Shown piece after piece: positions 22,432 through 62,441 of a stretch of DNA of 64,000 nucleotides. Position 1 is the first letter of the stretch. Every line of letters begins with the position of its first letter. The stretch comes from Haplodiscus bocki. Lineage: Eukaryota. A program made the position numbers and the translations under genes. The notes under the pieces were generated by a model. It was not told the DNA's origin, did not search any database, and saw only the letters and a list, made by a program, of their open reading frames with translations. The stretch lies in contig OZ296657.1 in the NCBI GenBank assembly GCA_965655095.1, positions 40,176,001 through 40,240,000 on the forward strand. The letters run 5' to 3'.

Positions 22432-22541
22432 AAGAAGGCTCATCCATCACGCGAAGCCATTCGCTTGTTGGAAAGTTGGTTTGGGTTCTGCGACACTCAA
22501 GTTGTCAAATTTAGGCACTTCGTCCTGCCCCGATTTGCTTG
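22432..22541 (+). CDS. Candidate N-terminal exon of the DEG/ENaC gene (start hidden in or before the gap)
   Basis: Open frame KKAHPSREAIRLLESWFGFCDTQVVKFRHFVLPRFA ending TG|GTGAGG. This phase-2 donor fits the phase-2 acceptor at 33581 (TG+G=Trp, giving ...RFAWKMLW), and the spacing to the TM1 Trp matches the DEG/ENaC pre-TM1 region. Confidence 0.5.
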
Positions 22542-23003
22542 GTGAGGAATATAAAAGACAGAAATTTTGAAAATACCCCACAAATAACACTTAGAAGGCG
22601 TTGCGGACAAAAAACGATGATAGGGACCAAAATTGTATCTAATTGATAGGTTGTCAGACAACTGAAAATTATTTGATGAAATTTCTTGTGAAATCGAAAA
22701 CTAAAATGAGTATATAGATAAAATTACACCTAACGATGAACGAAGAGTTAAGAGTAAAGTATCAGGCCACAAAAAGATATAAAATCGTAGCATATTTCGA
22801 TTTTTTTGCTGTCACTAACAAATAGGTGGTATCTCAAAACGGGTCCATAAAAACACATTTTCTTGTATCCACTGTTGGGTAATCCAGGATTGTTAAAACT
22901 AGATTATGCTCTGCTCTTCTGAATTGAATTGTAAGGTTGGATTATGCTATGTGTCTTTGAAATTTTCTTTTTAACGCTGTGAGACGAGGGTTAGAGGCCG
23001 TTT

Positions 23004-23130
23004 GGTGCCTCAGTAGTGTCTGTACCGTACATTTAGTGCCTCGGTGGCAACTGTACCCTAGACTAGTGCCTCAGCGGTGACTCTACTGTTGATTTGTTAG
23101 AGTTAGTGCCCTAACGGTGACTCAACTATG
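23004..23130 (+). repeat. Degenerate ~30-40-bp tandem repeat, 4 units
   Basis: Core (TA)GTGCC(T/C)...GTG...ACT at ~23004, 23034, 23064 and 23104. Confidence 0.65.
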
Positions 23131-25024
23131 GATATCAAAAGGGAATTGTCACTCCAAGTACCTTGGAGAACTGTGGTTGTTATGATTAATCCACTTCTTC
23201 TCTCATGAATTCGTTGATTGCATTCCCTTCAAGTTTTTCCTTGCGAGAACGTTTTGTCTTTATACACCCTCCTGATCTGGTTTGTTTATTGACTCTGGAA
23301 ATATATCAATTGTTTTGAATATTTTCTGGTCTTGGAAATGTTCTATTCAATGTTTATGTAATGTTCAGCGTGATTGTTTTTTTCTAGTACTTCTGTGAAA
23401 TCTTGAGTTTTGAAATGAGTTCTCAGAATAGACCACTTTATTCAACAGTCAAGAGCTACAAGACAACCTTATAATCACGAATCAAGATAAAACAGCATTT
23501 CTTAGCGCGTCTTACCCCCGCTGCCCCTGAATTATTAATCTAGATTTTTCTTTTGGAGTTAAAAATTTTTCATGGATACTCTGCCGATCCTCTGTTTCGT
23601 GGTGATGAATGGTACACGGTATTATTATCCAAAGACTGGTCGAGAAAAAAAACTGATCTGTACTTCGATTTTTATTGTGAGACTTTTATAGTAAACTACT
23701 TTTCAAATTTCTGCAAAATGCAAAAACACATTCCTCTCTAAAGGACAAACATTAGTTTACGAAAAATCGGAAAAACATTCATATCTGTACATACCGATTA
23801 TCAATCATCAGAATTGATACCTTCTTCGGAGTCTCAAGGTGTGAAAATAACAACTTTAGGTTCAGATTACGAAAGTTTTTACACATTTATTTGACGGTGA
23901 ATATGCAACTTTCACTTTGTTCGTTGAAGTAGTTTGATCATTTCAGATGGTTGACAACTGGGATGACAATTTTGAAGATGCTTTGATGTCTCGTCTACTA
24001 TTATCAGTCATTTTCAAAGCTCAAAATTTTTCACCGTGAACGTCTTTTCCGGGTTACCGAATACTAGGTGACTCAAAAGAGGCGATACATGCTCAATTTT
24101 TGGATCTCAAAATAGCTGTTGTTTGAAAAGAAGACGCCGGAGCTTTCTCCCATGGTGCTCTATCATTTTTGTCGATCAACAGAACCGTTATCTCTATTGA
24201 TTAACAAAGTTCAAAAGTGGCCATTTTAGGTTCGGACTCTCAGAGCTCCTTCACTTTGAAGCTGGAAATAAGTGTCATAATTTCCGATATGTGACAACTC
24301 AGATAAGTAGTGTTTGAAGCATTCTGTTGCCTTGTTTATTAATATTAGCAATATTTACATTTTGAGAGCTAAAAACTTACACACAAGTTTTTTGCTTTTT
24401 TTGGGTCACCCATAAAAAATAGGTTTGCATAAATGTTTTCGAAATTTGAATTTAAAGGATATTTGTCAACAGACTGCCAATTTCAAATCTCATTTGTTAA
24501 TCATGGGAGTTGATGATACGCGCTTAAGAACTCAACTTGAAAACTGCAACCTTTTTGATCAAGAAATTGAAATAATTTTGATATTCTGAAATCTGAACAT
24601 CTAAAACGGCATTTTTCCGTCCCGTTCTGATACTGGATGGGTGCCCCAAAAAACTTTTCATGTAAATTTTTCGAACTCTCAAAGCGGATGATACTAGTAA
24701 ACAAAACATCAGAACAACTTTCCAAATCACAAGCTGGATGATTGACAGTCGAAATAGGGCCACTTGAAAGTTTTTCGTACACATTGTTTACAAATATCAG
24801 CTGATAGAGAAATTGAACAATTTTAGACGGACCATTTTTGGGTTACTTAGTGTAGTACTAAGTTTAATTGAGCAAGCTCCCAGCCAGAAATGTGATTTTT
24901 CACATCGAAATCTTAAATACTAAAATGTTTGGAAAATTATTTGAGGATTTGATATGACTACAAAGTTTTTCATTTGATCAAAACCGCATCAAAATTTGAA
25001 GATTTTGAGATTTCAGAAAGTTTC

Positions 25025-28000: not shown

Positions 28001-28211
28001 TGTATCAGGCATGGTTGGCAGCAGGAGCCATTACGAAAAAAGCTCGCGTTAGAAATTTTTTGTAAAAAATATTTGTGCAACTCCGACGGTTTCTTTATTC
28101 CATCAGCTTTTATATTCTTTATAATTCCTTCACCTCTCCATAAAACGTTAGTTTCAATTAATTAATCATGTTTTATTTAATTAGCGTTTAAGCGTTATGT
28201 GGAACGCGATA
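25025..28211. mobile_element. Solo LTR, family A (3.2 kb), 4-bp TSD TTTC
   Basis: TTTC|AGTCGCAGAG...ACGCGATA|TTTC. 26200-28211 is highly similar to 54150-56172. Internal duplications at ~25850-26200 vs ~26690-27020 and a ~135-bp repeat at 27440/27570. Confidence 0.85.
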
Positions 28212-29512
28212 TTTCCCTTTTTAAAAATTTTCAATGCTAAAATTAAAACAGGATTTTTTCAATTCTGATGCTACTTATACTGGTAAGGAGGCCTGATATT
28301 CAACTTTCGGTGAAAAATTTTAACTTCTCAAAACAAAAATTGTCATATAGTTGTTTTATGAAATCAATCTCATTCCACGTTATAGACACGAATTTGATTT
28401 TATAAAAAATCATACCTTTGAATGCTTTAGAGGGGAAGCGAAGACAAAATCGGTTGATTTTTGTATTTTTTAAGGTTTTTAAAGTTTCAACAGAAGCTGG
28501 AAATTGATCGAAAAGTGGCAAAATGTGCTTCCTCGTAACTTTTCGATTTTTGGTCAAATTTTAGAACAAATAACACGACTAAAATCCTGTGAAAGTCCGT
28601 GAACAACTTAATTGATTGAACAACTTAATTGAACAACTTCCTTGAAAAATTCAGACTTCAAAAAATTGGGCTCTAAACTTGTCTAATTTCACTTCTCAAG
28701 AGTGCCAAAGCAAAAACTGAAAGGACTTTGCAGCAATGTACTTCTTGAATGTTTTGGACCACAAATTGATTATTAATACCATTACGACTAAGTGTTCAGC
28801 AAATGAGTTATTTCCAATTTCAAATTTTAGTGTGACTGTTGATAATGGTTTTTCTAACTGGCCATTAGCTACTTGTATTTCAAAATTGGGAGGGTCGTCG
28901 ATTTTGAGAATGTTATTGGGGGCTTTCTGTTTGATTGATTCCAAGTCATCCTGGGCGATTGCGCTGACAAATTGACAAATACTCCTGAGTCCACCAGAGC
29001 ATCTACCGTTAGATTATTCTCAAAATCCAGAGGCACATAGAGCATTTCTTGCTTCCGTTTCAAGACTACAGTGGATGTTAATGGGAGAAACACCTCATTT
29101 GTTTGTTCATCTCGCACCAGCCCTTCTTCAATTAGTGGGGTTGCAGTGGTGAGAGACGGAGTTGTTGTAAGTCCATTAGGGGTAGTCACTGCGTGCTGTT
29201 CTGTGTTTTGGGTGTTGGTAGAAGAATTTTTGGAGCAGTCAAGGAACGGTACTGGCTCATTCCCTGTTTTTCCCGAAGATTTTTCCGTGGTGTCCACGTG
29301 GTGCTGTGGTTGGGTTCCCTTGGGTGGTGACGTTTGACTTGCTACATTTGTCTTTATAGTCGATTCATTAGTAGTATTATTTAAATTGTCTTGGTTTGTA
29401 ACGATCTCCGTAGGTTGCTGCCAGACAACCTCGGGAATTGGCGGAAGTTTAGATTTTTCATTTGTCTCCGGTCTGTCGCATGCAGGTCCGGAGTGAAGAC
29501 GTGGCGTTTTTA

Positions 29513-29519
29513 GTTTAAA
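29513..29519 (-). promoter_or_regulatory. -1 programmed ribosomal frameshift slippery site U_UUA_AAC at the gag/pro-pol junction
   Basis: gag ends GCT TTA AAC TAA. The -1 frame (TTT AAA CTA AAA ACG CCA...) stays open and joins ORF 28869..29297, which contains the VDSG protease motif. A CTCCGG...CCGGAG stem lies downstream. Confidence 0.8.
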
Positions 29520-30810
29520 GCTTCGGCTGCAGCTTGGATATTTCCATCTGAATTGTTTTGAGCATTTTTTTGCTGGCTTTGGTTCTGTCCTTCCGGTCGT
29601 CTATTTCGTGGAGGCGGTCTATTCGCTGCATTTGCTCCAAGATAGCATCTCTCTGTGGAGTGGTTAGTTCTACCACATGTCTCACAGGGTGGGAAGACGG
29701 GTTTTGGTCTTCTGTCTCTTTGATTATTTATATTGTTTCCTTTGGTATCGGTTGCAACTTTGTTGTTATTGTGGTTAGAGTTTGTTTGGGCGCTTCCATT
29801 GTTGTTGTTGGCACTATTTGTGTTATTTCGGGTTTGGTCTTTCGGGTTTGGTTTGAGTTGACGACACTGGTTTTGATAGTGACTTGGTTTTTTACAATGG
29901 TGGCACGTTGGTCTGGGCTTGTTAGTGTTTTGCTGTGGGGTTTGTTGCGTCACAGTGTTTATGGGCATTTCATCCGGAGCTTCCAAACCATTTAATTCTA
30001 ACTCCCTTTCAAGATGCGACACAATCTGTTCATACGTGCCGTTTTCCAGATGCGCCTAGTTAATTGATTTCTTCAGGTGCTGGGGCATTTTGGCATAGAT
30101 GAATTGCTCGATGATCGCTTGGGCTGCAACTCCGAATGCGTCTTTTGCCAATTTCTGGAGTTCATCTAGAAAATCAATTAACTTCTGGTTTGAGGGGTTA
30201 AAGACCAGTCGTTGAAACTTGTGTTTTGCCGTAGCCATTGACTGGGGTTTCTCGTACTTTCTACGGAACACAGTCAGGATTTCTCCCAAATTCTCTCTGT
30301 TGGGGCTAGTGATGTTTTTGAAAGTCTGTAGAGCATCACCGCGCATGAGAGAGTGGAAGTAGTTTATCTTGTCTTCTTCCGTCAACTGATTGTGGATTTT
30401 CAAACTCGTTTGGAATATATCTTCAAACAGTTCGAATTTCTCTGATTTTCCGTCAAACGTAGGCATCTTCGTTGTCAGAGACTTAGGCAATTTCGAGATT
30501 CGGCTAATATTATTGTTGAAATTGGCTGAATTGGATTTCGTCGCCAATTGTTGAAGGGCCAACAAAATCTGGTCTGCTTCAATTGTCGCAGGGCTATTCT
30601 CACTGCGGAATTGAGGTTGACTTGTGGAGCGCGCCTTCTTCTGTTTGCCTGACGAAGTAGTAGGAGAGCAGTAGGGAATTTCTTCTTGAGTTGCTGTCGT
30701 CGCGTGAGGGTTGTGACAAATCTCTTCTGTGGCTCCTGTCACCATGTGAGGATAGTGACGAATTTCTCCTGTAGCTCCTGTCACCATGTGAGGATACGTT
30801 TCCGTCACCA

Positions 30811-32584
30811 TGTCTGCCTCAGAACTATTGAGTTGTCCCGAGTGGTGAGGAAAATACCCCCCTTCGGGATAAGGATCGGTTGAGGAGCGGTCCCCATGAA
30901 GTTCTCAGCTTTCTGTGTTAACGTTTCTAGACGCTCCCTGAAATACGGAACAAGTCCGCACTTGTGGGTTAAGGAGAAACTCGTCAAGTTTCGATAGAGC
31001 ACCCAAGATACGTGACTCCGTTTTGTTAAACTCCTTCGACAGTTTCTTAGTTACCCTCCCTTCAATCTCCTCGGAGACCTGGGAGATGTAACCCTGGGTT
31101 AACTCAGGGTCAAGTACATTCCGTCCTCTACTGCCTCTACTGCTGTCGGGCGTTTCTCTTGACACTGCCGCTAATTTTCTCTTGTTTCTCAGTGTTGCCA
31201 TATTTCTTGAGGGGAAAAATCTTGTCAGTGATGAAGACTGAATTTCTACCTTGTGTTTTAATATTGATGAATTTCCTCTTGGTATGAGGGATCATGTTCC
31301 AATCGTATAAAAGTCAAAAGATGATTTTTGAAAACAACAATACTAAACAGTCACAATATTTTATAAAAGTACCAAACCGAAAGGCTACAATTTATATAAT
31401 AATACTTGTACTTTTATTTCTCCTATTTATACCTTTCCTTGACGGGAAACAAAATTGTTTACACGCCAAATCAAGGTACAAATAGGGAAAAATACTTTAA
31501 TCATATTATTTATCAAAGAAATTGGATGCCGACTCTGGCGGGAAATAAACACCCTTCCGTCCATTTCTTCCCTCACGGACCGCGTCTGTTCAATCTTTCG
31601 ACAGAAAAAAGTACGGTCCGATCCGTCTAAAATGGACATCAAAGTGGTTATTCCCGCGCCGACATCATAAATAATAACATGAACAAAAGATCAAAGTTAT
31701 TTCCAAACAGGGAATAAATACAATAATACAGTTGGAAAAATAATTTAAAGTAAGGAAAATTAATGTTTATAGTCTCAAAAGATTCATGACTACATGCTGC
31801 GTCGATTAAAACCACTGTTTGGAACAAACTAGGCGTAAATCCTAGCCCGTTCCACGTTTCTACCAGCTCAGGCCTCACTTTGGCCGGAGTGTTCCGTGGC
31901 GGCTACGTAGCCGCTTGTAGCACTGCCTTCCGCAGTGCTACTGAGGAGAATGATTCTGGTGGCTACGTAGACGTCCCGTGGCCGTCCAAAGTGAAACAGC
32001 GTAGTAGCACAGCGGATTGACTGAAATTCTAGTGACGTCACCAGATTAGTTACGACGGAACACATACGGAACAAATATTCACTTTTAAAGTCAAGCTCTG
32101 TTCTAATAGTTAAGCTATTGAAAACTTGTTAAAGCTGTCAATCTAAAAAGATTACTGCACATTCAAAAAGGTGGATTTATATAATAATTACATTAATTAT
32201 ATAAAATAGCACCTAAAATTATTATAAAATACAGTGAATATTCCTTTGTTCCGCATCTATTCCGTCCCAATAAGGATCAGTTCTCCAGAATTAAACGTAT
32301 CGGATACGTGCTTTTTACATGAAATAAATGTTATGGGACGATACGTAACTACTACGTATCGTCCACATAAATTACATGTGTGCGTACTAGGTGGATACGT
32401 ATCTACTACGTATCCTTAAGTATAATTAAATGAGTTCATGAATTAAATAAATAGGGCTTCAAGTTTAAGAGTTTACGTATAAGTTTGGAGTGTCGCTGGT
32501 GTCTCTAACTTCTGCTAGATGGACCTGGGGTGTCCTTTGTTGACGGGATCGTTTGTCCGCAGGCTTCGCAGATGTGCTGCGACA
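30811..32584 (-). mobile_element. 5' LTR of family B (includes gag start at 31201)
   Basis: Homology to the solo LTR 40395-42094 ends where minus-strand ...GACA is followed by TGGTGAC (PBS-like). Confidence 0.7.
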
Positions 32585-33580
32585 TCAACCTTAGTCATGT
32601 TAAATGATTTTTTAGAGACCTAAATGAATGCAACCGTTTCAGATTTTGAACTAGTTAAGTCTTTTTATGAACCCGTCAACACTAATTTTTTCTTCTAAAA
32701 CCTGAAGATGGGCCCAAAAAGGAAAAAATTACAGGAGCTTCACATAAACTCGAGTTTGTTCTCCAATTTTTCACTTCAACACTACCTCCAGAAACTCTCC
32801 GTTCACGCGTAGCTTTTAAAAATTCATTACCCACTGAAAATTTTCTACTTCTACTGCTGCGTAAAATTGAAGTCTCATAAAACATTTGAGTATAGAATTT
32901 CCGCAAGTAATGACATGAAAATAAAAACCCAGTCTATGCAATACGCTTGAAAAATTTGTGGATTCCTCAGTTTTTATCGCCTTCAATAGAAAATTAAATG
33001 AGGTTAGAAAAAATCTTTTTGCAAGAAATCAAATGTTTAATTTTCGGCTTCGGAAAAATTTCGTATCAACTTCTCGAAACGCGCTTTTTAAAATCTAATT
33101 AATGTTCGATTTACAGATATGTTTTTTATCAGCTTTGATTCACCGAGCACTCGTTCAAAAACTAATCATGTTTGGAAGATAGATGCAACAGTGGACTTCC
33201 AAGTTTTATAATTCCGTTTGCAAGAAAAGCTCGAAGAAGCCGCCTAACAAAAAATGTGTGGACCTCCTTCGACATTCAAAACAGTTTTATCTATGACTTT
33301 CTGATTGATTCTATTTTATCGAACCTGGAATCAAATCATGACCTACTTGAACAAGTTTTCAGTTTCCACTTTCAATATCGAGGTAAAATTCGAAAAAATC
33401 TTTGAAAGCTGAAACAGAAAAATAATTTTCTCAATTCAATTTGTATCGATTGTGAACTCAAATTCCTCCGTTGTGTGCAAAAAAGTTGTCTAGTTTCTTT
33501 TTTGAGTAATTTGCCTAGATTTTGAGGGTGAAAAGTTCCCAGTGCCAGCTTGTTTTATTCATAAAATTGAATTGCTGCAG

Positions 33581-33729
33581 GAAAATGCTGTGGATTATTT
33601 TCGTTGCCGGTGGGGTCTTCATTTTTCTGCTTCAGTCAGTTGAACTTCTTGTAGACGTGTTCCAGTATCCAACAACTCTCGATATTACAGAGGAAGAATT
33701 TGATCAAGATTTCTTTCCAGTGGTCACAA
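33581..33729 (+). CDS. DEG/ENaC (amiloride-sensitive channel family) exon: TM1 and post-M1
   Basis: TGCAG|G acceptor; KMLWIIFVAGGVFIFLLQSVELLVDVFQYPTTLDITEEEFDQDFFPVVT; donor A|GTTAGT. Splicing to 33808 creates FPVVTICN, the family FPAVTxCN signature. Confidence 0.9.
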
Positions 33730-33807
33730 GTTAGTTTCTTGTCACCAGCTATTCAGAGTAATGGCAAAATTGGAATTTGGAAGAATTTAGTGCACATTTT
33801 CTTTCAG

Positions 33808-33987
33808 TCTGTAACGCCAACAAACTGCGGATGGACCAACTCGATTCTTTGCACTCTGAGAACCAATTACGTAAACTGACGTCATTTCAATCCTACACTT
33901 CTAGATCAGTAAATTTAATCAGAAAGGAACTCGAGAGCTATCTTGAAAAAGACGAAGAATTAGCGACAGAAAATGACTTGGATGGAA
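33808..33987 (+). CDS. DEG/ENaC gene exon (ICNANKLR...)
   Basis: TTTCAG|TC acceptor after a 78-nt intron; CNANKLRMDQLDSLHSEN...ENDLDG; donor A|GTAAGA. Confidence 0.88.
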
Positions 33988-34046
33988 GTAAGAAATACCA
34001 TACACTTGGTTGAACCAAATCAACGAAAAAGTTGAAGAAAAAAGGA

Positions 34047-34530
34047 GAACAACACGGCCGGCTAGCACTGGCATAATTTTCGCCCAACTACAAATATTTT
34101 GATCAACTTTTGCAAACGGTTAAGAACAAAACTGAATTAATTTAGTTTTCAAAGAGTTTTTAAAAACATCAATTCCACCACTGATTTCTGGACATTATGC
34201 AAAAGGGTATCACGATTTTCCGTTGAAAAACTTTTGTCTCGCAGTGCCGAAAAATTTCGTAGAGGAACCCTTCTGTGTTTCAGAAAATTTCCGGTATCGA
34301 AAAATATTAGGGATAAGAGAGAGGGCGGGTATCACAATTTTCCGTCAAAATTGTTTTGTTTCACAGTACCAAATCATTTCGTAGAGGAACCCTTCTGTGT
34401 TTCAAAAAGTTTCGGGTATCGAAAACTTTATGCCTAAGTGAGAAAAATCACGATTTTCTATAGAAAATGACCATACTGAATGAATAATTTTTCTTGCATA
34501 TTACCTATGCGGCGAAAAATAACAACGTTC
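34047..34530 (+). repeat. Non-autonomous interspersed repeat with internal ~120-bp minisatellite (copy 1)
   Basis: Near-identical inverted copy at ~42888-43620. Internal units TATCAC(G/A)ATTTTCCGT...CGTAGAGGAACCCTTCTGTGTTTCA...GGTATCGAAAA occur twice; a decayed unit is at ~19885-19965. Confidence 0.9.
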
Positions 34531-35054
34531 AAAGAAATCAACAAAGTAATGAACCTTTTCCACAAGACTTCGAAATGCTAATTTCACCGAATAAGCGTAC
34601 ATTGCTTTTCATTCATGAATGTCTTGCAACCATAGTTGCAAATAGTTGGTCAGGCAATGGTCGACTAGCGGCAGAGGCATCCATGACGTGCTGAAGGTTA
34701 TAATGCTTAAACCTCCAATGGCCATTTTTACTAGTTCATAGGAAAAAATTCACCGCCAATGCCTTTTTTGGGACATGATCATCCGCTTCTAGGGCAAGGA
34801 CTAAGGATTTGCTCGAGGTTTGAACGAGAAAGGATGGAACCTACAAGGGCTCCCTTTGTAAACTCCGCATTCAAACCACTGTCACCGCTTGCCAGGTGTT
34901 TCTCATAATACGGGTTATATGGGCTATTTTAGGGTTATATTGGCTATTTTACTTCATCAATACAAAGATTTTCCTGGCTCGTTGTCTTTCAATTCAAAAG
35001 TTGATCCTAATGTTATTCTAGTTTTCTTTTCGAAATGATGGCCAACATTTTTAG

Positions 35055-35220
35055 GACAAATCACATCAGTGTTTTCGAAATCAGTTTTCTGGATTGATTC
35101 CAAAATTGGATTCTCCGAAGAGTTCAAAAATTATCTAAACGGGCCGATTATCGAAAAATGCATTGAGAAAAATCTCGTTAAATTATCGAAATGTTTCCAG
35201 CAAAAATTGTGGCAACCTAT
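35055..35220 (+). CDS. Probable DEG/ENaC gene exon
   Basis: TTTTAG|GA phase-1 acceptor compatible with 33987; open frame QITSVFSKSVFWIDSK...EKCIEKNLVKLSKCFQQKLWQP; donor AT|GTAAGA. Confidence 0.55.
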
Positions 35221-35788
35221 GTAAGAAAATCTTTCAACTTGCATAATTTTTCAGTAGATTGGTCGGATTGTGGCAATTTTATATTTCAATTGTTTTTCTC
35301 AACAACCTTGGGTTTCATATATAGTCGGTGGTTTTTTAACAAAAAAGCCCGACTACTAAGTATTGCAACTATTTGTGGCCTGTTTCTTCGCATATATTTG
35401 ACTAAATGGTGTTATGAAATGAATTGATAAAATGATGAATTGATGAAATAATGAATTAATGGATTGATTTTTTGTTCTCAACAAGGGAGAAAAGATCGAA
35501 TTTTTCAAAGGTATCAGCAAACAATATAAAGTTTCAAAACACCAAAATATCTCCGACAAAATTTTTCGACTGTGCGAGGCAATTTTCAGGATTTCCCTTT
35601 CGTCGTAACAAATTTTTCAAGTGAAAATTTACCTCGCTTGAATGATTTTGAAACTTACCGGAACTGTTGACCTTTTTTGTTTCTATAATGTTATTCACAG
35701 CACTGTGCTCTTGTAGTCAATAAATTATTGCTTTTGCTATCAAGATAGTTATACTGGCAAGCTTCGACAACCTTGAATTTTTATATAG

Positions 35789-35979
35789 GTTGCATTGAGG
35801 AGAATCGAACAAAAGTGATTGATTTTGTGAAGCAAGAACTAGATGCAGTTGATACAGACTCATACAACATTGCCACGTATTTTAATGGACAACTGACGTC
35901 TTACTCGGAAGGACAATACAACTACGTGTTTCAATGCAACGACAAGTCATGCTTCAAGCATTTTGAAGCTTGCAAACGG
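35789..35979 (+). CDS. Probable exon ending in the first half of an LDLa-like module
   Basis: TATAG|GT acceptor; CIEENRTKVIDF...YVFQCNDKSCFKHFEACKR; donor CGG|GTTAGT. Needs an unidentified intervening exon to be in phase with 35220. Confidence 0.65.
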
Positions 35980-36049
35980 GTTAGTCCCTGCTTACGTGTT
36001 GATTTCACCAATAAAGTTTAGTGTTTTGACATTAAGGAAGTCATCGCGT

Positions 36050-36150
36050 AATGACTGGACCGGGGTCATCTCGACTGGAAGCTAGATACCGGTCCCAAGC
36101 CCGGCGCCATTCATATGGAGGAGGAGGGTTGGGGCCTGGCGTTCCCCGTA
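36050..36150 (+). ncRNA. Twister-ribozyme-like motif at the LINE 5' end (partial or variant)
   Basis: CCGGTCCCAAGCCCGG (36089-36104) matches the twister P4/L4 hairpin, and the following GGAGGAGGG supplies the P2 3' strand and the pseudoknot partner. The canonical upstream P1-UAA-CUCC-GC segment is not cleanly present. Confidence 0.55.
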
Positions 36151-39100
36151 AAACTAAGCCATGAACCCACTATGCTAAGTCCTCTTACTGACATACCGAT
36201 CTCAGCTACGCCCCCAGCGGTAACTGGGGCCGCCATGAGTGCCGTCGTGGCGGAAACTGCAAATTCGGCAGAATCCTACAAGAAACTGAATCATTCCAAA
36301 AACTTTCTTCATATGTGCACATGGAACGTGTTAACCCTACTACCCATTGGATCCCTGGAACTCTTAGACGTGTCGCTTACCAACCATTCTATCGACGTCG
36401 CATGCCTTCAAGAAACTAGAATCAGAGGCGATACAAAGTCAGTGACCAGAAACTACCAGATACTGACAAGCGGGTATGAAGACAAAAAGGGCCTCCACGG
36501 TGTCGGGATCGCTGTTTCTAACAGAATCAGTAACTCTATTCAATCGTGGCAGGCCATCAGCGCCCGAATATGCGCTATGCGCATCAATGCCAAGCCCACG
36601 CCCATCTCCATCTTGTCCTGCTATGCCCCTACCGAGGATACTGATTCATCCAAAAAAGACGACTTCTATATGAGCCTGCAGAGAGTCATAGACGCCGTTC
36701 CAAAGGGCGATGCCCTAGTCATCGGCGGTGATATGAATGCGAAGCTAGGATGGTCCAGTACATCCGAAAGCAAGCACATTGGTCGGTTTGTTAAGCCATC
36801 ACAGCGCAATGACAATGGTGATCGGTTAGCTCTTTTCGCATCCGCTAATGACCTCTCCGTTGCTAACACCATGTACCAGAAGAAAAAACACCAACTCAGC
36901 ACGTGGACATCAAGGGACAGGAAAACGAAAAACCAAATCGATTTCTTTCTTATAAAAAGAAGATGGCGCACAGCCATAAACGACATCCGCACTCGCAAGG
37001 ACAACCTGCTCATTGATAGCGACCACCAGATGCTTAAGTGCAAGATCAAATCCAAGCTGAAGACATACACAAAGTCTTACAAAGCCCAACGGTTCAACAT
37101 TGAAGGCCTTCGACACCCTGCCACGGCCAGACAGTACTGTCAGGAGCTACGTAAAACCGCTCAAGCGCTTCCGCACGACAGTACCGTGAACAGAAAATGG
37201 GAGTATATAAGAGACGCTATGATCAAAACTGCTAAAAAGACCATCGGCAAGACTCAAACCAAAAGTAAACCCTGGATTTCTCAGGAGACTCTCAATGCAA
37301 TTAAACATAGAGAGAGCCTCAAAAACAAGGGTGCGCCGCGCAACAAGATTAAAGAACAGAGGAAGCACATCAAGAAGCTTCTCAGGAGAGACAAAAACAA
37401 ATACATTGACGACAAAACTGCCGACATCGAACTGGCTAATGAGAAAGGGCACACCAGGGAAATGTACCGGCTGATCCGAACACTTGGAGGCTGTAAAAAG
37501 CATGCTTCGGAAACAATTAAAGACTCTAGCGGTCAGCGAATTTCCGATACCAGGAAAATCATGGAAAGATGGGCAGAGCACTTTGTCGAACTGCTCAACG
37601 CTGATACTAGCTCCACTCCATTACTCAAACGATTCACCCCACCCGTGGTCTTAGCAGAAATAGATACCGAAGCTCCAACCAAAAATGAGATAACCCACGC
37701 TTTGAGAGAACTTCAGAATCGTCGTGCTGGAGGATGCGACGGCATCCCGCCCGAGTTGTACAAAGAAGGCGGCGAGGCTCTCATTGACATGCTGAAATCC
37801 CTTCTCGATGACATCTGGGACAGTGAACAAATTCTGGATGAATGGCGGACTTCTGTACTTCTTCCTTTCCACAAGAAAGGCGACACGCAGATTTGTAGTA
37901 ATTACCGTGGCATCTCTCTGCTCTGTATAGGCTTCAAAATCCTCGAAACTATCCTTCTGGCTAGACTCACAGAAGCCTACGAACCTGCTGCTCGAGACAA
38001 TCAGGCGGGGTTCAGAAAAAAGAGAGGATGCCGAGACCAAGTTTTCGCGCTTCGACAAATTTTGGAGCAACGAAGTGAATTCAACAGATCTACAGTTATG
38101 ACGTTCATCGATTTCAAGGCGGCGTTTGATAGCGTAAACCGCAATGCGATTTGGCAAATCTTCGAACGCCTAGGCATGCCACAAAAGATCGCCAACATCA
38201 TCAGAAATATGTATACCGATACGAATAGCATCGTGAAGATGAATAACAACCTCTCCGACCCCTTTCCGGTGTGCTCGGGTGTGCGCCAAGGCGGTGTTCT
38301 GTCGCCTTTCTTATTTAATCTTCTGATCGACTGGGTTATGCATACAGCCACTGAGGGCACCAATCACGGAATACAGCTTGAAACTCTCATTACCGACCTT
38401 GACTACGCTGACGATATCTGTCTCTTGGAAGACAACAGCGCTGATGCCCAGGCCCTCCTCGATAGGGTCCTTTCTGCCGCGGTCGAAGTTGGTCTCAAAA
38501 TCAACGCCGGGAAGACGAAATGTATGCTCTCCAGACTAGAGCCGTCTTCGATTTACTGTAACGGCTGTGCCCTTGACAACGTAGCAGAATTCGATTACCT
38601 AGGCAGTCGCATCTCTCACAATGGTGACATCTCCAGTGAGATCCAGCATAGAATTACCCGTGCAACTGCTAATGCCTGCCAGCTCAACAAACTCTGGAGC
38701 AATAGAGATATCACTATCAAAACCAAGAGCAAAGTGTATAAAGCCTGTGTTCGTAGCGCCCTCCTGTACGGCGCAGAGACCTGGACCCTAAGGAAAGCTG
38801 ATCTCTCCCGACTGGACGCATTCGAGAACAGATGTGCTAGAAAATTCTTTGGAGGTAAAACTGAACTCAGATCTTCGACCATCAGAAGCATGGCACACCT
38901 GGGTGGCTCACTGGATCCACTCCTCCGGCAGATGCGCCTGAAATGGTGCGGGCATGTGTTCCGGATGACAGAGGACAGAGTCACCAGAGAGGCATTGATG
39001 TTCGACAAGGCTACATCTTGGAAGCGCCCACCAGGGGGAATGAGAAAGACCTGGAGAACTACTGTGGCAGAAGATCTGGAGCCCATTCTGAAACCCCCAC

Positions 39101-39231
39101 GGATGAGATCCGATATTTGGAAGAGGAAGTGGAAGGATACCTGCAGTGAAATTGCGACGGACAGGCCGAGATGGCGAGCAGTTGTCCGGGACGCGGTATC
39201 GGTGGCTGGCAATGGGCAGACATGCCTCTAG
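36115..39231 (+). CDS. APE endonuclease-reverse transcriptase (RTE-type ORF); true start may be a downstream ATG
   Basis: EN motifs TWNV, CLQET, YAPT, GDMNA, NQIDF, SDH; RT motifs NYRGISLL, QAGFR, FIDFKAAFDSV, GVRQG, YADD, YLGS; RTE C-terminal RLKWCGHVFRM; no stops. Confidence 0.97.
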   Translation: MEEEGWGLAFPVKLSHEPTMLSPLTDIPISATPPAVTGAAMSAVVAETANSAESYKKLNHSKNFLHMCTWNVLTLLPIGSLELLDVSLTNHSIDVACLQETRIRGDTKSVTRNYQILTSGYEDKKGLHGVGIAVSNRISNSIQSWQAISARICAMRINAKPTPISILSCYAPTEDTDSSKKDDFYMSLQRVIDAVPKGDALVIGGDMNAKLGWSSTSESKHIGRFVKPSQRNDNGDRLALFASANDLSVANTMYQKKKHQLSTWTSRDRKTKNQIDFFLIKRRWRTAINDIRTRKDNLLIDSDHQMLKCKIKSKLKTYTKSYKAQRFNIEGLRHPATARQYCQELRKTAQALPHDSTVNRKWEYIRDAMIKTAKKTIGKTQTKSKPWISQETLNAIKHRESLKNKGAPRNKIKEQRKHIKKLLRRDKNKYIDDKTADIELANEKGHTREMYRLIRTLGGCKKHASETIKDSSGQRISDTRKIMERWAEHFVELLNADTSSTPLLKRFTPPVVLAEIDTEAPTKNEITHALRELQNRRAGGCDGIPPELYKEGGEALIDMLKSLLDDIWDSEQILDEWRTSVLLPFHKKGDTQICSNYRGISLLCIGFKILETILLARLTEAYEPAARDNQAGFRKKRGCRDQVFALRQILEQRSEFNRSTVMTFIDFKAAFDSVNRNAIWQIFERLGMPQKIANIIRNMYTDTNSIVKMNNNLSDPFPVCSGVRQGGVLSPFLFNLLIDWVMHTATEGTNHGIQLETLITDLDYADDICLLEDNSADAQALLDRVLSAAVEVGLKINAGKTKCMLSRLEPSSIYCNGCALDNVAEFDYLGSRISHNGDISSEIQHRITRATANACQLNKLWSNRDITIKTKSKVYKACVRSALLYGAETWTLRKADLSRLDAFENRCARKFFGGKTELRSSTIRSMAHLGGSLDPLLRQMRLKWCGHVFRMTEDRVTREALMFDKATSWKRPPGGMRKTWRTTVAEDLEPILKPPRMRSDIWKRKWKDTCSEIATDRPRWRAVVRDAVSVAGNGQTCL

Positions 39232-40394: not shown

Positions 40395-42094
40395 TGTCGA
40401 AGCACACCTGCGAGGCATGCGGCAAGCCCCTATTAAAACGAAAGACACCCTAATGCTCAGAACAAACTCAAAACACTAATACTTTTGCTCAAACTTTAAA
40501 ATACTTCACAACTTTTGTACATATATACGGATACGTATCCAATACGTATCCATAACAAATGTACATGAATATAGTGGCATGTATTCTAAACGGAACACTT
40601 TACTAAACTGATCCACACTAAGACGGAACCGTTACGAAACAAACCAATTTTCACAGAGTAGTATTAACCTAAATGGTGCTATTTTTATGTTAATCTATTT
40701 ATTCAGTTATTATATAGAAATCCACCTTTTCGGTACAAACATGTTGATTGATTGCAATAAGTGCAGTTAACAGCGGTACTTTGATATAAATTAGTGTTAG
40801 AAAAAGCGTGATTTGCTTACAATAGAGTTGACTCTCGGAGTGAATATTTGTTCCGTACGTGTTCCCTCGTTACTTGTCTGGTGACGTCAGTAATACTATT
40901 CTAACTAGGCCGTGCTGCAGTGTCGTGGTGAATACGGAGTGACTCCGTGTTCACCCCTCATTTGAGCACAGCTTACTTAATTTCAACTAATACTACTAGT
41001 GGCTACGGAGCTGTTTCGGATACCACTAGTAGCTACTCGTCGGAACGAGGAGTAAACTAGTAGTGCTACTAGTTTCTCCTCATTTCTAAAAGAGTAAAAG
41101 ACGCAAAGATTAATTGATGACAAAATGAGCATGAAGATGATGATTAACTGTTTTTTTGTACTAAAGTCATTCATTCTGTATTTTTATTTTTCTATTTTTG
41201 TCTTTTATTTTATTTTACTAACTAAGAATTTCTTAGTATTTTCCATTTGTGGATTATACATTTTTTCAAACTGCAAGCAATATGTCAGCTGGGGAATAAA
41301 CACTGTGATGTCCATCTCTGACGGATTAGGTCCCTCCAATTTCTGTCGAAAGATGGAAAACGCGCGTCCTATGAGGGAATAAATGGATGGAAAAGTTGTT
41401 TATTTCCCGCCAGAGTCAGCATTTTGACTTTGATGTTGTAACTTATAAGTACTTTTCCCTATTTGTACCCTGACTTGGCGTGTAAACAACTATGTTTCCC
41501 GCCAGGGAAAAGGTATAAATAGGAGAAAAGAAAGTACAGATTATTAGAAATTTGTTATCATTCTGTAGTACTGACGATAATACCCAGTATTGTTACTTCC
41601 ATTATTCAAAAGACTGTAAAACCACAATTTGATTTCCCTTCAGTAAAAACAAACAATTTTTAATCGCTGACGTTCACTTTTCCCGTCGAAAATGGCAACT
41701 CTGAGAAACAAGAAGAAATTGGCAGCATTAAACAAGGAAAAGTGTGAGGAACTTCGTAGAAGCAATGTGACACAAAACTCGATTGTTCCCAGATCACAAG
41801 AAGACTACATAACTCAAGTATCTGAGGAAATTGAGGGAAGAGTCACAAAGAAGTTGTCTCAGGAGTTTAGTAGAACAGAAAACAGCATATTAAGCGCATT
41901 ATCACGTCTTGAAGACTTTCTCATGAACCCACTAATTCAGGGCCAGTCCGGAACCGCTCCGGAGACGTCACCGAACGCATATGGCACAAACCAGGGAACG
42001 AATGAGGACAACTCCCAGAGTGATCCTCATCCTGAAGCAGGTGTTTTCCAGAGCCAGACGACACGAAACTCTGGCCCACAAGATAATCACGACA
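40395..42094 (+). mobile_element. Solo LTR, family B (1.7 kb), containing the first ~134 codons of gag
   Basis: Termini TGTCG...CGACA; flanks ATTTC/ACTTC (5-bp TSD, one mismatch). Colinear with the reverse complement of 30811-32584. ORF 41692.. MATLRNKKKLAA...ISQVSEEIEGRVTKKLS-like loses gag homology right at 42094. Confidence 0.82.
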
Positions 42095-42887
42095 ACTTCA
42101 GTGGGGTTGCAGTGGTATTTCTGGGAGCTTTTTCCAAGAAGTAAAGCCACAAAAAACCGGAAATTGTTTCAATTTTGATGTCTTCACTAATTTACATCAA
42201 TTCAGTTAGGTTTTGGTCAATTTTCACTATGCCTGAAAAAAATAATACTCCATTCTAAATTTTGCAAGATGCCGGAAGTGATCAATTATTTGTTTTTTGA
42301 TTGTTTTCAAAACTTTCAGAATCCTAACCTCCAAACTGTTACTTTACCGCCTTTTGCGCGATAGTAATAACTACGTTGGACTGGACGTTTTCTGTGCTAA
42401 TTTGGTTGTGTGTTTTTTTAAATAATTTCAAAAGAAATGGCTAAAACTGTTTTGTTTTCAGCCCTGGTACTGTCTTAGCAACCGTACATCATCTCCTACC
42501 GGTTTTTAATTGAGTCAAATGTTTCTCATAATCAACGGTCTGGTCTGCATTTTGATTTTTGTAGGATATAACTGGTGAACAGACAGTTTTGAATGGGTGC
42601 TTAAATTGAAAATATCAGAAAGATTTCGGCTCTTACCTGAAATTAGCCGTCTTTGAAACGGTGTTTAGTTATTTGTAGGCGTTCAATCGATGCAAGTTCT
42701 ACTTGGGCAAAATCAAATGCAGTAGACCAAGATTTTTGCTGGGTTTTCACTAGTTTGCTGTAAGTTTTGTTACTGAAAGTTTTCGAGGAAAAAAGAAAAA
42801 TAGAAAGTGTTCTTTTTGGAAATTTCTTTCAATTTTGTTGTCCTCGCAAGTCCAAATTACCTCAAATCGTTTCCCAATCCCCCATTA

Positions 42888-43620
42888 ATATTTTTGCCGC
42901 ATATGTAATATGCAAGAAAAATGATTCATTCAGTAGGGTCGTTTTTTTCAGACCAAATTTGCCAACTCTGTTTATTCAAAAATAAGTAACAGCAGTAGGG
43001 TTAGGACAACATGGTTCTGAAGCGGTAGGTCCGGGTTCAAGTCTCCGTCAGGCCAAATATTTATATGATTTCACTGACATTTGTCAGAAATTCCAATGGT
43101 TCCCATGGCACAGTGGGTAGGACAACAGGGTTTTGAAGCGGTAGGTACGGGTCTGAATCCCAGCCTTTACCTAAATTTTTGAAGTATTACGATGCAAAAT
43201 TGTGATACCGCCCCCGCTCTTATGCATGACAATTTTCGATACCAGAATTTTTCTGAAACCAGGAAGGGTTCCCCTACGAAATTTTTTGGGACTGTGAGAC
43301 AAAACAATTTCGACGGAAAATCGTGATACTCGCCCCCTCTCTTATCCCTAATATTTTTCGATACCGGAAATTTTCTGAAACACAGAAGTGTTCCTCTACG
43401 AAATTTTTCGGCACTCCGAAACAAAAGTTTTTCAACGGAAAATCGTGATACCCTTTTGCATAATGTCCAGAAATCAGTGGTGGAATTGATGTTTTTAAAA
43501 ACTCTTTGAAAACTAAATTAATTCAAAACAGTAGTTTTGTTCTTAACCGTTTGCAAAAATTGATCAAAATATTTGTAGTTGGGCAAAAAATATGCTAGTG
43601 CTAGCCGGCCGTCTTGTTTT
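42888..43620 (-). repeat. Copy 2 (inverted) of the 34047-34530 repeat, with extra tRNA-derived units
   Basis: Reverse-complement match, also visible as near-identical spurious ORFs 34234..34437 and 43167..43424. Confidence 0.9.
42988..43165 (+). pseudogene. Two tandem tRNA(Gln)-like / SINE-head-like units (~116-bp period)
   Basis: Unit 2 GGTTCCCATGGCACAGTGGGTAGGACA...TTTTGAA has a pol III A box and a TTG anticodon-like loop. Unit 1 has TTCTGAA and B box GGTTCAAGTC. The acceptor stems do not close. Confidence 0.55.
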
Positions 43621-44948: not shown

Positions 44949-45018
44949 AACAATTTTGGAACTGGGTCCCTCCGAAGTCAATGTGATGGAGGCGAAGACA
45001 TATCCTACAATCGTTGCG
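44949..45018 (+). CDS. Probable small Cys-containing exon (may begin at 44883)
   Basis: TTGCAG|AAC; NNFGTGSLRSQCDGGEDISYNRC; donor G|GTGAG, phase 1, compatible with 47301. Confidence 0.55.
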
Positions 45019-47300: not shown

Positions 47301-47420
47301 GGTTCTGCCCTCCTACGCAATTTCAGTGTGAGACAGGTTCGTGTGTAGAGCCAATGAGAAGATGTGACGGAATTATCGACTGCCCTGATGGATCTGATGA
47401 AGACTCTGAATTCTGTGACC
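47301..47420 (+). CDS. Exon encoding a canonical LDL-receptor class A repeat (absent from the ORF track)
   Basis: TTTTCAG|GG acceptor; [39 protein letters not shown] (6 Cys, DCxDGSDE); donor C|GTTAGT; symmetric phase 1-1. Confidence 0.93.
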
Positions 47421-51294: not shown

Positions 51295-51420
51295 GAACAT
51301 GGAGTGCAGTCAAATTAATTTATTATGAGAACTCTCTCGAAAATCCCAGTAAACAGACAAATGCTTTTCAATGTTTCAAAAACGGGATCATGCGAATTGA
51401 AAGTGTGGGTGTTGAATATG
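51295..51420 (+). CDS. Candidate exon of the channel/LDLa gene
   Basis: CTACAG|GA phase-1 acceptor; TWSAVKLIYYENSLENPSKQTNAFQCFKNGIMRIESVGVEY; G|GTTTAG phase-1 donor; frame-compatible with both neighbours. Confidence 0.45.
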
Positions 51421-53247
51421 GTTTAGGTCTGGTTAGAAGCGGAAAAACAATAGGAAGTGCACAGTCGCATTACGATGTTTCTTGTCCTATGTGTGCAAAA
51501 AACTTCTTGATGAAATTTTCAGCAAACAACTTCCCGGAAAACATGCAGTCTTGACAAAAAAAATCCCTTTACATTAGGACACTAGTGGAAGAATTCAGGC
51601 GGTTAGCTGTAGAGAATTATGAAATTGAATTTAGATTTTAAAAGTTCCTTTTCATTCTCGACGTTTTCAGCCAATCAATATTCGGGTGCATGTAATCAAA
51701 TCAATGCAATTTTCAATCCCTAGATTGTTCTAGGAAATGAAAGTAATGATGTAATAGGGTGATATAAGAAATGAACATGGTAGTTTTGTAGAATTGTAAG
51801 CATATAATTTGAGGTTTGTCTATATAGTGTTACTTTTTGCCAACTCCAGCCAATCGAGATACCGATGTAACAAACAAATTTCATGGTATTTCAACGTAAA
51901 AGAATTCTTCTCAGTTTGAAAAATGCTGATTGAGGCCTTGACTTAAACAATGCAGCAGTGTTGAAGAAAGTCGCGTTTCAAAATTAGGACAGACATACAA
52001 TTTTTTGTTTCTGGCGAGGGTGTCGTACGAGGTATCAAGTGAAAATAATGTATTCCGAGGTGACAAATTTCAGAAGTTTTTTTTGGGAACAAACTTGTTG
52101 ATTGAGATGTCGATAAAAATATTTCAGTGGTCATTGTTGAGGAAAATCGAGCTCGAAGACTGTTGTTCACTACCACTAGAAACATAATTATACATTTTCG
52201 GTATGTGAAGCTTTCAATATAAAGAATAGAATGCTTGCTGATTTTTTCTTCGCAAAGTCTGCGCAACCGGAAAATTTCCGATTCAGATCTCCATATAAGA
52301 AATCAAGTCAAAAACTATGAAGAAGTATAATTTGAAATCGAGAAATGTCTATTTTCAAGAGTTTCATGGCTACTTGGGACTACCAGGATTCCTTCACAAG
52401 GAATAAACTCAACAATTTTTGCACAGTTTTCTGCGAGAGAATTCTTTGAAAAAAATTAAAGGGAGAACAATCAAACCGTTAGTGTCGGAGAATAACGATA
52501 CTGGATGCAGAGATCCATAGAGTGTAAAAGCATCTTTTGGCATTTTCGCTCCGCCCGGATTCCGGCTCAACAAAGTGAAAACGGTGACTTTTCCTTTGAA
52601 AAGTGAAGTTGATGGAAGCCTTCGAAGCAGGAAGAAATCAGGCACTATAGAAATATGAGATTGATTCTTCTTTTTACAAATAAGACACCAGGTTTTTAGC
52701 TTTTCGAGAAAATCGAAAAAGGCCAAAAAACCCCATGAATTGATGCTGATGAGTTCAACTTTAGGCGCGCAAACACAAACTTGAACTAATTCAAAATGGT
52801 GAAAATGCTGCTGAAATAGACACACCTACGGGAGCTTAAAATGTATGCTAATTTTGTTATTCATCAGATCTGGAAGATTGAACGACTCAAAGAATTTATC
52901 TTGAAAGTTTCGAAGGTATCCAAAATACCAATGATTAAAATAAGTGGTGTAGAATGAACATTATTGTGAAAGAAAGTTATGATAATTTAGGTTTGGGAGT
53001 TTGTCGTCGTGCCGACAAAAATGGTGTAGATTTTAATATTCCCCCAATGCATGTAAGATTGCTGATGAAGCAGAGCTTTTCAGTGCAATTATGAAGATAT
53101 GCAAGGTAAAACGGATATGACAAGGAAAACTTTCCCGACGAAGTCTTAATTCTCATTTGAAAATTTTTTACCTTCTTCATAAAATGAAAAATCTGCAAGA
53201 AAGCATATCAGCAAAAAAACCTGCAACCATACAAAGAACCGATAAAG

Positions 53248-53450
53248 GATGGTTGTGTCAATGGATCAATAGTTAATGGCTTCCTTCGGAGCATTTTTTG
53301 TGCATTTAATCTTCGTGTGTCGCCAGTCTTTATGATCTATGAGAAGCCTGGAACAATTCCGTATAGAAAAGTAATTAAAACCTGACTTGACAGTTTAACT
53401 TTGTACCTCAATCGTAGTTTCTTTGATTTCATCGGAGACACTGAAATTCA
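53248..53450 (+). pseudogene. Polinton/adintovirus-like minor capsid (penton) C-terminal remnant
   Basis: DGCVNGSIVNGFLRSIFCAFNLRVSPVFMIYEKPGTIPYRKVIKT*LDSLTLYLN...DFIGDT resembles the CDxIxGSxVNG...ILYSF...PGYxIxxxP...Y...L...DFxGE pattern. Confidence 0.5.
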
Positions 53451-53917
53451 TCGTTCATTAAAAAAAATCTAACTTATTCAAACCATATTCAAACCCAAAT
53501 GTTAAAAACATTAAAAATTTCAAAACAGAATCCTATTGTGTTTGTGGAAAACATTTTTATGACTCAGGTAGTATAACAGGAGATGTAAACTGCAACAAGA
53601 AGACTTTTGCATGAAGTTATTTATTTTGATGGAAGCGTACTGACCGTCAGAAGAATGATTCAATGACGGTCTCTGATGTAACCATAGATTAAAAAGACTC
53701 AGAGTGTGAAATACTTTGATAATGTAGCTGGTAAGGCAGGCACTAGTGCTAGCAAAAGGCTGGTTGATAATCACGCATTACAATTTGAACTGGCTGCAGA
53801 AAAAGGATAAGGGATGTTATATTCAACAAGGGAGATGCAAGATCAGATAGACAACAAATAATTAGGAATTAATTGCTAATTCGTAGGAGATAACGGGTCA
53901 GTACCGATCGGAAGTAC

Positions 53918-61907: not shown

Positions 61908-62024
61908 TGAAGGAAACTGAAAATTATTTTGTGTGCTGTTCGAGCAATTTGAGAATCCCTATTGAGCGAAGATGTGATGCTGTGATTGACTGCACGAGAG
62001 ATTATTCCGATGAAATTCTATTTG
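61908..62024 (+). CDS. Exon encoding a divergent LDLa-like repeat
   Basis: TTTTAG|TG; KETENYFVCCSSNLRIPIERRCDAVIDCTRDYSDEILF; G|GTGAG; phase 1-1. Confidence 0.85.
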
Positions 62025-62225
62025 GTGAGATGTCAAAACTTCGGTCGAAAACTCAAAAAAATGAGACTCTTTCAATTTGCATACATTCGTAATTTGGCAT
62101 TTGCAAGTTCTAACTTAACCCATCATTGTATCTGGATGATTTGTCAAATACCACTTTGCTTCTAATTGTCAAACTCGTTATTCTTTTTGTTCATACATAT
62201 AGTAAAAAAAACTGTTTTTTGGCAG

Positions 62226-62441
62226 GTTGTCTGAAAAACATGACAATGCCCCAGAGTGATGAAAACAATACATTTATGACATGTGTGGATGGCAGTACTC
62301 CACGTTCTACGTTCACGAAGAGACAGAAAATCAGTCTTGTCGAGGTGGGAGACGGGGTCACTAATTGTGATTGGCAAATGGATGAAGTGTGCGCGTGGAA
62401 AAAACTTCAGAGGTCAACGTATTCGAACCCTTTTGACCCGA
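62226..62441 (+). CDS. Exon encoding a divergent LDLa-like repeat
   Basis: TGGCAG|GT; CLKNMT...FMTCVDGS...ISLVEVGDGVTNCDWQMDEVCAW...PFDP; A|GTTAGT; phase 1-1; N-glycosylation sequons NMT and NNT. Confidence 0.8.

Follow-up and report, generated by a model that had tools for sequence, protein, structure and literature searches.

A probable DEG/ENaC channel subunit gene of Haplodiscus bocki with LDLa-type modules at the finger site

A DEG/ENaC subunit gene that extends beyond the window

We analysed a 64,000-nucleotide stretch of the Haplodiscus bocki genome (contig OZ296657.1, here C10; C10:40176001-40240000, + strand), hereafter the window. The genome measures 1.5 Gb and is rich in retroelements; the window has a G+C content of about 36-38% and contains a 200-N gap at 22232-22431. 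It very probably holds the 5′ half of a single 65-kb, 14-exon gene that encodes an 805-residue channel subunit of the DEG/ENaC (ASC) family. In coordinates extended past the window end, the gene spans positions 33585-98438 of the + strand (C10:40209585-40274438). The gene structure, the reading frame, the family membership and the conserved architecture are shown by the sequence evidence detailed below.

Exon 1 (33585..33729, +) starts with an ATG at 33585, encodes the first transmembrane segment (TM1; hydrophobic stretch MLWIIFVAGGVFIFLLQ) followed by ...DFFPVVT, and ends in phase 1 at a GTTAGT donor. A preliminary description, made from the sequence alone, had joined this donor at 33729 to the acceptor at 33808 (ttctttcag). 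The resulting ...DFFPVVT/ICNANK... completes the FPxVTxCN motif as FPVVTICN, and both the splice sites and the Pfam ASC score of the TM1 exon (24.1 bits; cut-offs were 23.6 bits for ASC PF00858 and 24.1 bits for LDLa PF00057) confirmed the proposal. Exon 1 also aligned to the TM1 of L045, a paralogous locus of the same genome. Exon 2 (33808..33987, +; phase 1 at both ends, donor GTAAGA) contributes ICN, in which C50 of the model falls, and the first finger helices (ANKLRMDQLDSL...DLDG). Just 5′ of the ATG at 33585, an acceptor (ctgcag/G) at 33581 suggests a further exon upstream.

Exons 3-7, which carry the LDLa-type modules, are described in the next section. The palm, thumb and second transmembrane (TM2) exons had been predicted to lie beyond the window. 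We fetched 200 kb of downstream DNA together with sixteen ASC loci of the same genome, and the 264 kb were searched in six frames by tblastn and with two hidden Markov models (HMMs) built from the paralogues. The missing palm, beta-ball, thumb and TM2 exons turned up on the + strand, in order and in phase, at 5.6 to 34.4 kb beyond the end of the window. The palm exon (exon 8; 69614-69877 = L001:5614-5877 = C10:40245614-40245877, +) contains GHQQQDLFIQCSFNNEDC...FGNCF and ...EKLGHQQQDLFIQCSFNNEDC...FGNCF. It is followed by the beta-ball exon (72033-72211 = L001:8033-8211, +; GLSVLLNAETY...VPTGFES) and by two shorter exons at 72995-73093 (L001:8995-9093, +; ...PDPFSEC...) and 73287-73395 (L001:9287-9395, +; ECESDCLNREKLRVCKC...LCEVTD). 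The thumb exon (89027-89163 = L003:5027-5163, +) reads SCECPDQC and ...SCECPDQCEYEQYSY..., and a further exon lies at 97446-97646 (L004:3446-3646, +; ...FLTLKVYLTTL...). The TM2 exon (98049-98438 = L004:4049-4438, +) encodes GGLVGLYLGLSVLSLLE and MEIIFSNLGGLVGLYLGLSVLSLLEVV..., a basic cytoplasmic tail and the stop; its G/S-x-S selectivity-filter motif is present as G-L-S together with the following acidic residue (GGLVGLYLGLSVLSLLEVV).

In the 264 kb, the best matches were TM1 at 33.6 kb, LDLa at 47.3 and 61.9 kb, palm at 69.7 kb, thumb at 89.0 kb and TM2 at 98.0 kb, all of them on the + strand and in protein order. Only one other match was comparably strong, a weak one to the thumb region that fell at 203.9 kb and thus 106 kb outside the gene. 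With the paralogue HMM, this weak match ranked among the top five; the remaining four were the TM1, palm, thumb and TM2 exons of the gene, ordered on the + strand. Chance is excluded as the source of these ordered exon matches. Among single exons, the TM2 exon scored 19.0 bits with Pfam ASC (positions 430-454), while the palm exon and the thumb exon, each taken alone, gave no Pfam match at E<=0.01 and were found only with the HMMs of same-genome paralogues. The locus was not listed in a genome-wide PF00858 scan because the gene is too divergent exon by exon.

When spliced, the 14 exons gave 805 codons without internal stop or frameshift and with a terminal stop. All 13 introns were GT-AG with consistent phases, as checked base by base at every junction; in the window (exons through 62441), all donors were GT, five of them GTTAGT/G, and the acceptors were pyrimidine-rich AG. 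The spliced model scored 158 bits (E 1.5e-50) against an HMM built from the same-genome ASC paralogues that carry LDLa and CUB domains, and 96 bits against the HMM of all fetched paralogues. Hydropathy windows above 1.8 were confined to residues 1-26 and 679-706 of the 805-residue model, corresponding to two transmembrane segments. In an alignment with 133 relatives, Cys occupied 13 palm and thumb columns in no fewer than 96% of the 134 sequences, and the model has Cys in every one of them (C394, 401, 418, 507, 529, 533, 542, 544, 559, 569, 583, 585 and 589), which argues for a folded and constrained ectodomain rather than a decayed copy.

An LDLa-type insert between the finger helices and the palm

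Exons 3-7 form an insert of 714 nt (238 codons) between the first finger helices and the palm. These five phase-compatible exons encode four modules of LDLa type, of which the first is degenerate, the second canonical, the third a conserved variant and the fourth a half module derived from LDLa. The term array of LDLa repeats, used in the preliminary description, is thus fair with regard to origin, but just one of the four modules fits the family definition.

Exon 3 (35789..35979, +; phase 1 to 0) encodes a finger segment and, at its end, the first half of the degenerate LDLa (FQCNDKSCFKHFEAC). This half module, already recognised from the sequence, pairs with exon 4 (44949..45018, +; phase 0 to 1), which supplies the second half (CDGGEDISYNRC-G). 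The end of exon 3 is colinear with HQCNDGSCIPLLSVCDG in the paralogous locus L044, and the junction residue G of exon 4 corresponds to the contiguous SIC-G-TC of the same locus; exon 3 as a whole had no detectable paralogue match. Module 1 as joined from both exons gave no Pfam match, but L044 has an intact LDLa at the colinear position.

Exon 5 (47301..47420, +; phase 1 at both ends) is the canonical LDLa that had been reported there, with six Cys, a DCPDGSDE calcium cage and a PF00057 score of 42.7 bits. Apart from itself, its best matches in the genome were C6:75700530 (66%) and C4:80211064 (51%), both within paralogous ASC loci. The two following exons had both been described as divergent LDLa repeats. 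Exon 6 (61908..62024, +; phase 1 at both ends) encodes a variant LDLa (YFVCC...CDAVIDCTRDYSDE) that scored 17.4 bits with PF00057, below the cut-off, and that keeps the CD..DC....SDE cage with an altered Cys pattern (adjacent CC), its last Cys coming from the first codon of exon 7. The pattern F-V-C-C-x12-C-D-x3-D-C-x-R-D-x-S-D-E is kept in seven paralogues, and all genome matches of exon 6 below E=0.001 were at or near ASC loci. Exon 7 (62226..62441, +; phase 1 at both ends, donor GTTAGT) is a conserved LDLa-derived half module (GDGVTNCDWQMDEVCAWK...NPFDP) without a Pfam match. In a profile built with seven paralogous modules, only the C-terminal 22 columns of the LDLa profile aligned (hhalign P=1.3e-4, probability 54%). 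In the motif DG..DC....DE.C.WK, the G, C, D-E and W are invariant among the seven paralogous modules and exon 7, and the fourth Cys is replaced (GDG). Exon 7 joins the palm exon 7.2 kb downstream (L001:5614). Between 62441 and the palm exon, the paralogue HMMs gave no match to a CUB domain.

The chain of phase-1 exons first proposed (44949, 47301, 51295, 61908 and 62226) held up in the base-by-base check for all members except 51295. The candidate exon at 51295..51430 (+) has an open frame and a usable phase-1 acceptor, but nine GT sites would be compatible with the frame and none of them stands out as the donor. It was dropped, since the paralogues with an uninterrupted reading frame pass directly from the 47301-type to the 61908-type module (FCD-L/P-...FVCC) and have no counterpart of it.

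Paralogues carry the same modules in one reading frame

Whether the LDLa modules and the channel belong to one gene was judged from paralogues of the same genome. Three intronless open reading frames (ORFs), L021 (872 aa), L022 (868 aa) and L023 (843 aa), and the partial copies L024 and L034 contain the whole architecture in a single frame, in the order TM1, FPAVTxCN, finger helices, LDLa, Cys-rich unit, CUB, palm, thumb and TM2. In L021, L023 and L034, Pfam found ASC in two stretches together with CUB and Ldl_recept_a. The five loci are cleaner examples of the finger-insert architecture than the window gene and are easily cloned. L021 (718-3330 = C10:91470717-91473329) is an intronless DEG/ENaC gene whose product is already present, unnamed, in protein sets derived from ENA (P0001).

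Similarly, three 3-kb loci (L042, L044 and L045) hold, in one open frame, the second half of an LDLa, a variant LDLa, a module of the 62226 type and about 45 residues from the start of the palm exon; L044, for example, reads ...DQFLEACLEKTG...NDGVPDCINGMDETCGWK...DPFKTPEFYEYLNFLEMLETNPAGSRWYTMVSREELEKLGH.... The junction residues of the window gene (FCD-L-K, LF-G-C and DP-T-I) are reproduced by contiguous paralogue sequence. In L045, an exon with the HG gating motif and TM1, the LDLa exons and the palm lie within 3 kb on one strand. The best non-self genome matches of exons 5, 6, 7 and 8 followed the same order and strand in two ASC loci, one on C6 (75700530, 75700994, 75701703 and 75708338, with TM2 at 75722101) and one on C4 (TM1 at 80204656, then 80211064, 80212623, 80213128 and 80217871), and subsets of exons 5-8 matched in the same order in four C9 and two C11 loci. 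Judged by this colinearity, the model belongs to a subfamily of ASC channels with an LDLa insert, placed between ASC positions of about 107 and 128. The claim that LDLa and ASC are combined in one gene is thus borne out by paralogues that carry both in one reading frame.

Downstream of the LDLa exons of one paralogous ASC gene, we also noticed a long trinucleotide run of the GAT/ATG type with poly-Asp and poly-Met frames (L043:2117-2656; C9:40153782-40154321).

Distribution of the ASC+LDLa architecture

The rarity of the architecture implied in the preliminary description was overstated, as at least 12 loci of the same genome and many acoel, hemichordate and echinoderm proteins in RefSeq/UniProt share it. 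The window gene is part of a lineage-expanded subfamily with LDLa modules, plus CUB in the intronless members, at the finger site.

An exhaustive HMMER search with the palm-to-TM2 half of L021 retrieved 274 cluster representatives at E<=1e-30. Among the best 150 of these 274, 38 had at least one strict LDLa signature, and many showed a TM1 motif, an LDLa array and a TM2 motif in this order. The strict pattern misses some of the LDLa modules found by Pfam, so the label undercounts them. The combinations confirmed by Pfam comprised nine LDLa and ASC; eight LDLa and ASC; ten LDLa, two Kringle and ASC; 11 LDLa, three Kringle, four PAN and ASC; three LDLa, CUB and ASC; and one LDLa, CUB and ASC (hemichordate and echinoderm examples bear the analysis labels P0059, P0151, P0058, P0090 and P0049). 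All 24 named LDLa-bearing representatives that we looked up were from Ambulacraria or an acoel, in a biased sampling of RefSeq/UniProt models. They included the hemichordates Saccoglossus, Ptychodera and Glandiceps, the echinoderms Patiria, Acanthaster and Anneissia and the acoel Symsagittifera. In the databases such entries are called uncharacterized, LRP2-like, Kringle domain-containing, degenerin mec-10-like or ENaC alpha-like; LRP2-like, where given to ASC+LDLa entries, is a mislabelling.

The RefSeq proteins Saccoglossus kowalevskii XP_077866593.1 (nine LDLa) and XP_006821452.1 (11 LDLa, three Kringle, four PAN), Patiria miniata XP_038045203.1, Anneissia japonica XP_033126039.1 and Ptychodera flava XP_070566951.1 resemble the window gene in having TM1 with FPxVTxCN, LDLa repeats, palm, thumb and TM2, with the Pfam ASC domain split by the insert. 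They differ from it by more numerous and canonical repeats and, in some cases, by additional Kringle, PAN or CUB domains; none of them is characterised. The DEG/ENaCs with LDLa and CUB (L021-L023, and XP_063722317.1 and XP_063721483.1 of the acoel Symsagittifera roscoffensis) have the insert at the same ASC position (Pfam about 107/128) and, like the window gene, place LDLa first after the finger helices. Their ORFs, however, are intronless and combine a single LDLa with a Cys-rich LDLa-like unit and a CUB, whereas the window gene has four LDLa-type modules, 13 introns and no CUB match. S. roscoffensis proteins were the nearest named relatives of the LDLa-CUB genes of the present genome (34-37% identity), a likeness that gives only a hint about taxonomy.

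In a FastTree phylogeny of the C-terminal halves, the LDLa label required nine changes, compared with about 30 when labels were shuffled, and was concentrated in two clades, one with LDLa-CUB proteins and the other with ambulacrarian LDLa arrays. Full-text literature searches for DEG/ENaC in combination with LDLa or CUB returned nothing relevant, and neither a 2022 review of the family nor a 2023 phylogeny covering Xenacoelomorpha refers to LDL, Kringle or additional domains.

Possible role of the insert and alternative explanations

The stimuli that gate DEG/ENaC channels are protons, peptides, proteases or force; they are handled by the finger, which is also the most variable part of these channels. 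The paralogue L021 aligned to residues 55-138 and 249-563 of human ENaC gamma, and the split of this alignment at 138/249 indicates that the insert occupies the finger/GRIP interval. Vertebrate ENaC alpha and gamma also have a large regulatory insertion (finger/GRIP) in this interval, where it separates the post-TM1 strands from the palm. The GRIP, whose inhibitory effect is relieved by protease cleavage, is not known to be related to the LDLa-type insert, and the ENaC finger/GRIP is not known to contain LDLa or CUB. LDLa modules take up Ca2+ and recognise protein ligands through basic residues of the latter, and gating of ASIC and ENaC is controlled by the finger-thumb interface.

The subunit may form trimeric, Na+-permeable channels in which a Ca2+-binding LDLa stack on the peripheral finger would bind an extracellular protein or matrix partner, or sense Ca2+, and the signal would pass through the finger-thumb interface to the gate. 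From what is known of the families, we tentatively regard as the most likely role that of a docking or sensor module that depends on Ca2+ and links an extracellular partner to gating, the main alternative being a structural, trafficking or assembly role. The stack might act as a built-in counterpart of Neto1 and Neto2, the CUB- and LDLa-containing auxiliary subunits of kainate receptors whose ectodomains tune the gating of a ligand-gated channel. Neto is a functional analogy only and not a channel homologue, since it acts in trans on ionotropic glutamate receptors, while the modules are here fused in cis; the CUB domain of Neto2 was among the PDB matches of the CUB of a paralogue. The only named precedent for added modules that could be documented is the EGAS group (EGF plus ASC) of Caenorhabditis elegans, which gave no currents in oocytes (PMC10424705). 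These DEG/ENaC subunits resemble the window gene in their extra Cys-rich extracellular modules and in being functionally uncharacterised, and differ from it in that the modules are EGF instead of LDLa and the lineage is nematode.

Several observations weigh against a single, functional gene with such a role. Exon 2 ends and the palm exon starts in phase 1, so the 714 nt (238 codons) could be removed with the frame kept, and an isoform that joins exon 2 to exon 8, with a finger of ordinary size, is possible. A search of sequencing runs found no RNA run with this locus; the four in which it occurs are genomic, and their contigs cross intron 1 without a joint at 33729/33808. Both points would suit two transcription units or obligatory skipping, with the TM1 exons spliced to the palm and the LDLa exons either skipped or forming a nested or independent gene. 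We consider this very improbable. No start, signal-peptide, stop or transmembrane exon was found among the LDLa exons, as the preliminary description had already noted for a stop exon, TM2 and a new signal peptide; moreover, a single ORF contains the modules and the start of the palm in L042, L044 and L045, and the modules with both TM1 and TM2 in L021-L023, and the same exon order recurs in ancient paralogues with 30-66% identity. Other adverse points fit a decaying or silent copy, that is, a divergent paralogue swollen by transposable elements that is no longer expressed or channel-forming. In the tree, the window gene stood near the ambulacrarian LDLa-array clade on a branch of 2.64 substitutions, long enough to make the placement unreliable, and its best identity was 27% (core, relatives in the tree). 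The degenerate module 1 lacks the fifth Cys and the SDE, and with them the disulfide and calcium-cage pattern. Neither a motif scan nor tblastn with the N-terminus of L045 revealed an N-terminal exon carrying the HG gating motif in the 33.5 kb upstream, and the model begins at TM1; this exon could hide in the 200-N gap at 22232-22431 or before the window. The introns reach 16 kb and are filled with retroelements and an extremely high-copy repeat. Polymorphism showed no clear constraint either: exons 1-3 had seven variants, three synonymous and four nonsynonymous (Y28F, H64D, F121I and F164L), too few to demonstrate constraint. Across 33577-35973, the reference and the contigs of two samples differed at ~25 single bases (about 1.2-1.4%, in exons and introns alike); heterozygosity is high or the samples are divergent. 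A silent copy is still improbable, given the 805 codons in 14 exons without stop or frameshift, the 13 canonical splice-site pairs and the retention of the 13 palm and thumb Cys, the FPxVTxCN motif and the G-x-S of TM2.

The binding and gating role itself is what we infer by analogy, and the gene might be real while its LDLa stack serves folding and quality control in the endoplasmic reticulum, trafficking and endocytosis, or subunit assembly. Three of the four modules are non-canonical, and in type II membrane proteases LDLa and CUB domains often serve as spacers or as stems that bind chaperones. The variant modules, on the other hand, share one unusual pattern that persists among paralogues with 25-60% identity, and occupy a finger site relevant to gating. 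A stack without ligand or gating function is accordingly possible, although we do not favour it over a docking or sensor module.

The window gene is a divergent member of an uncharacterised architectural variant of DEG/ENaC that is already in the databases, so its individual importance is modest and the interest lies in the class. Across the subfamily, LDLa, CUB, Kringle and PAN, classical protein- and Ca2+-binding units, stand in place of the finger, which points to unexplored stimuli such as secreted proteins, lipoproteins and matrix. Candidates for expression studies are the compact, intronless L021-L023 and the RefSeq models, whose cloning would be much simpler than that of the window gene. 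Members with a modular finger have been seen so far only in an acoel, hemichordates, echinoderms and the present genome. As a speculation that we hold doubtful, they could represent an old, unstudied DEG/ENaC clade whose finger turned into a modular receptor (LDLa arrays with or without CUB, Kringle and PAN), gated or tethered by extracellular proteins or matrix instead of protons or small peptides. The shared architecture might then serve as a rare genomic character for grouping Xenacoelomorpha with Ambulacraria.

Retroelements and repeats around the gene

Intron 3 contains an intact-looking ORF of 1058 aa from an RTE-type non-LTR (long terminal repeat) retrotransposon (36055..39228, +), which has the same orientation as the gene and is not part of it. 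Its product comprises an endonuclease and a reverse transcriptase (Pfam Exo_endo_phos, 30 bits; RVT_1, 135 bits). Upstream of the gene, at 28872-31291 (-), lie retroelement gag-like ORFs (DUF1759/Retrotrans_gag), and a related gag-like ORF of 157 aa that begins MATLRNKKKLAAL... is found inside intron 3 at 41671-42141 (+). Introns 2 and 3 also hold inverted copies of a short interspersed repeat, at 34010-34600 (+) and 43170-43520 (-), with near-identical open frames (FSFQRVFKNINSTTDFWTLCKRVSRFSVEKLL...). The word depth of the interspersed repeat, summed over contigs in the DNA runs, was 1e5 to 1e6, compared with about 4-100 in the flanks.

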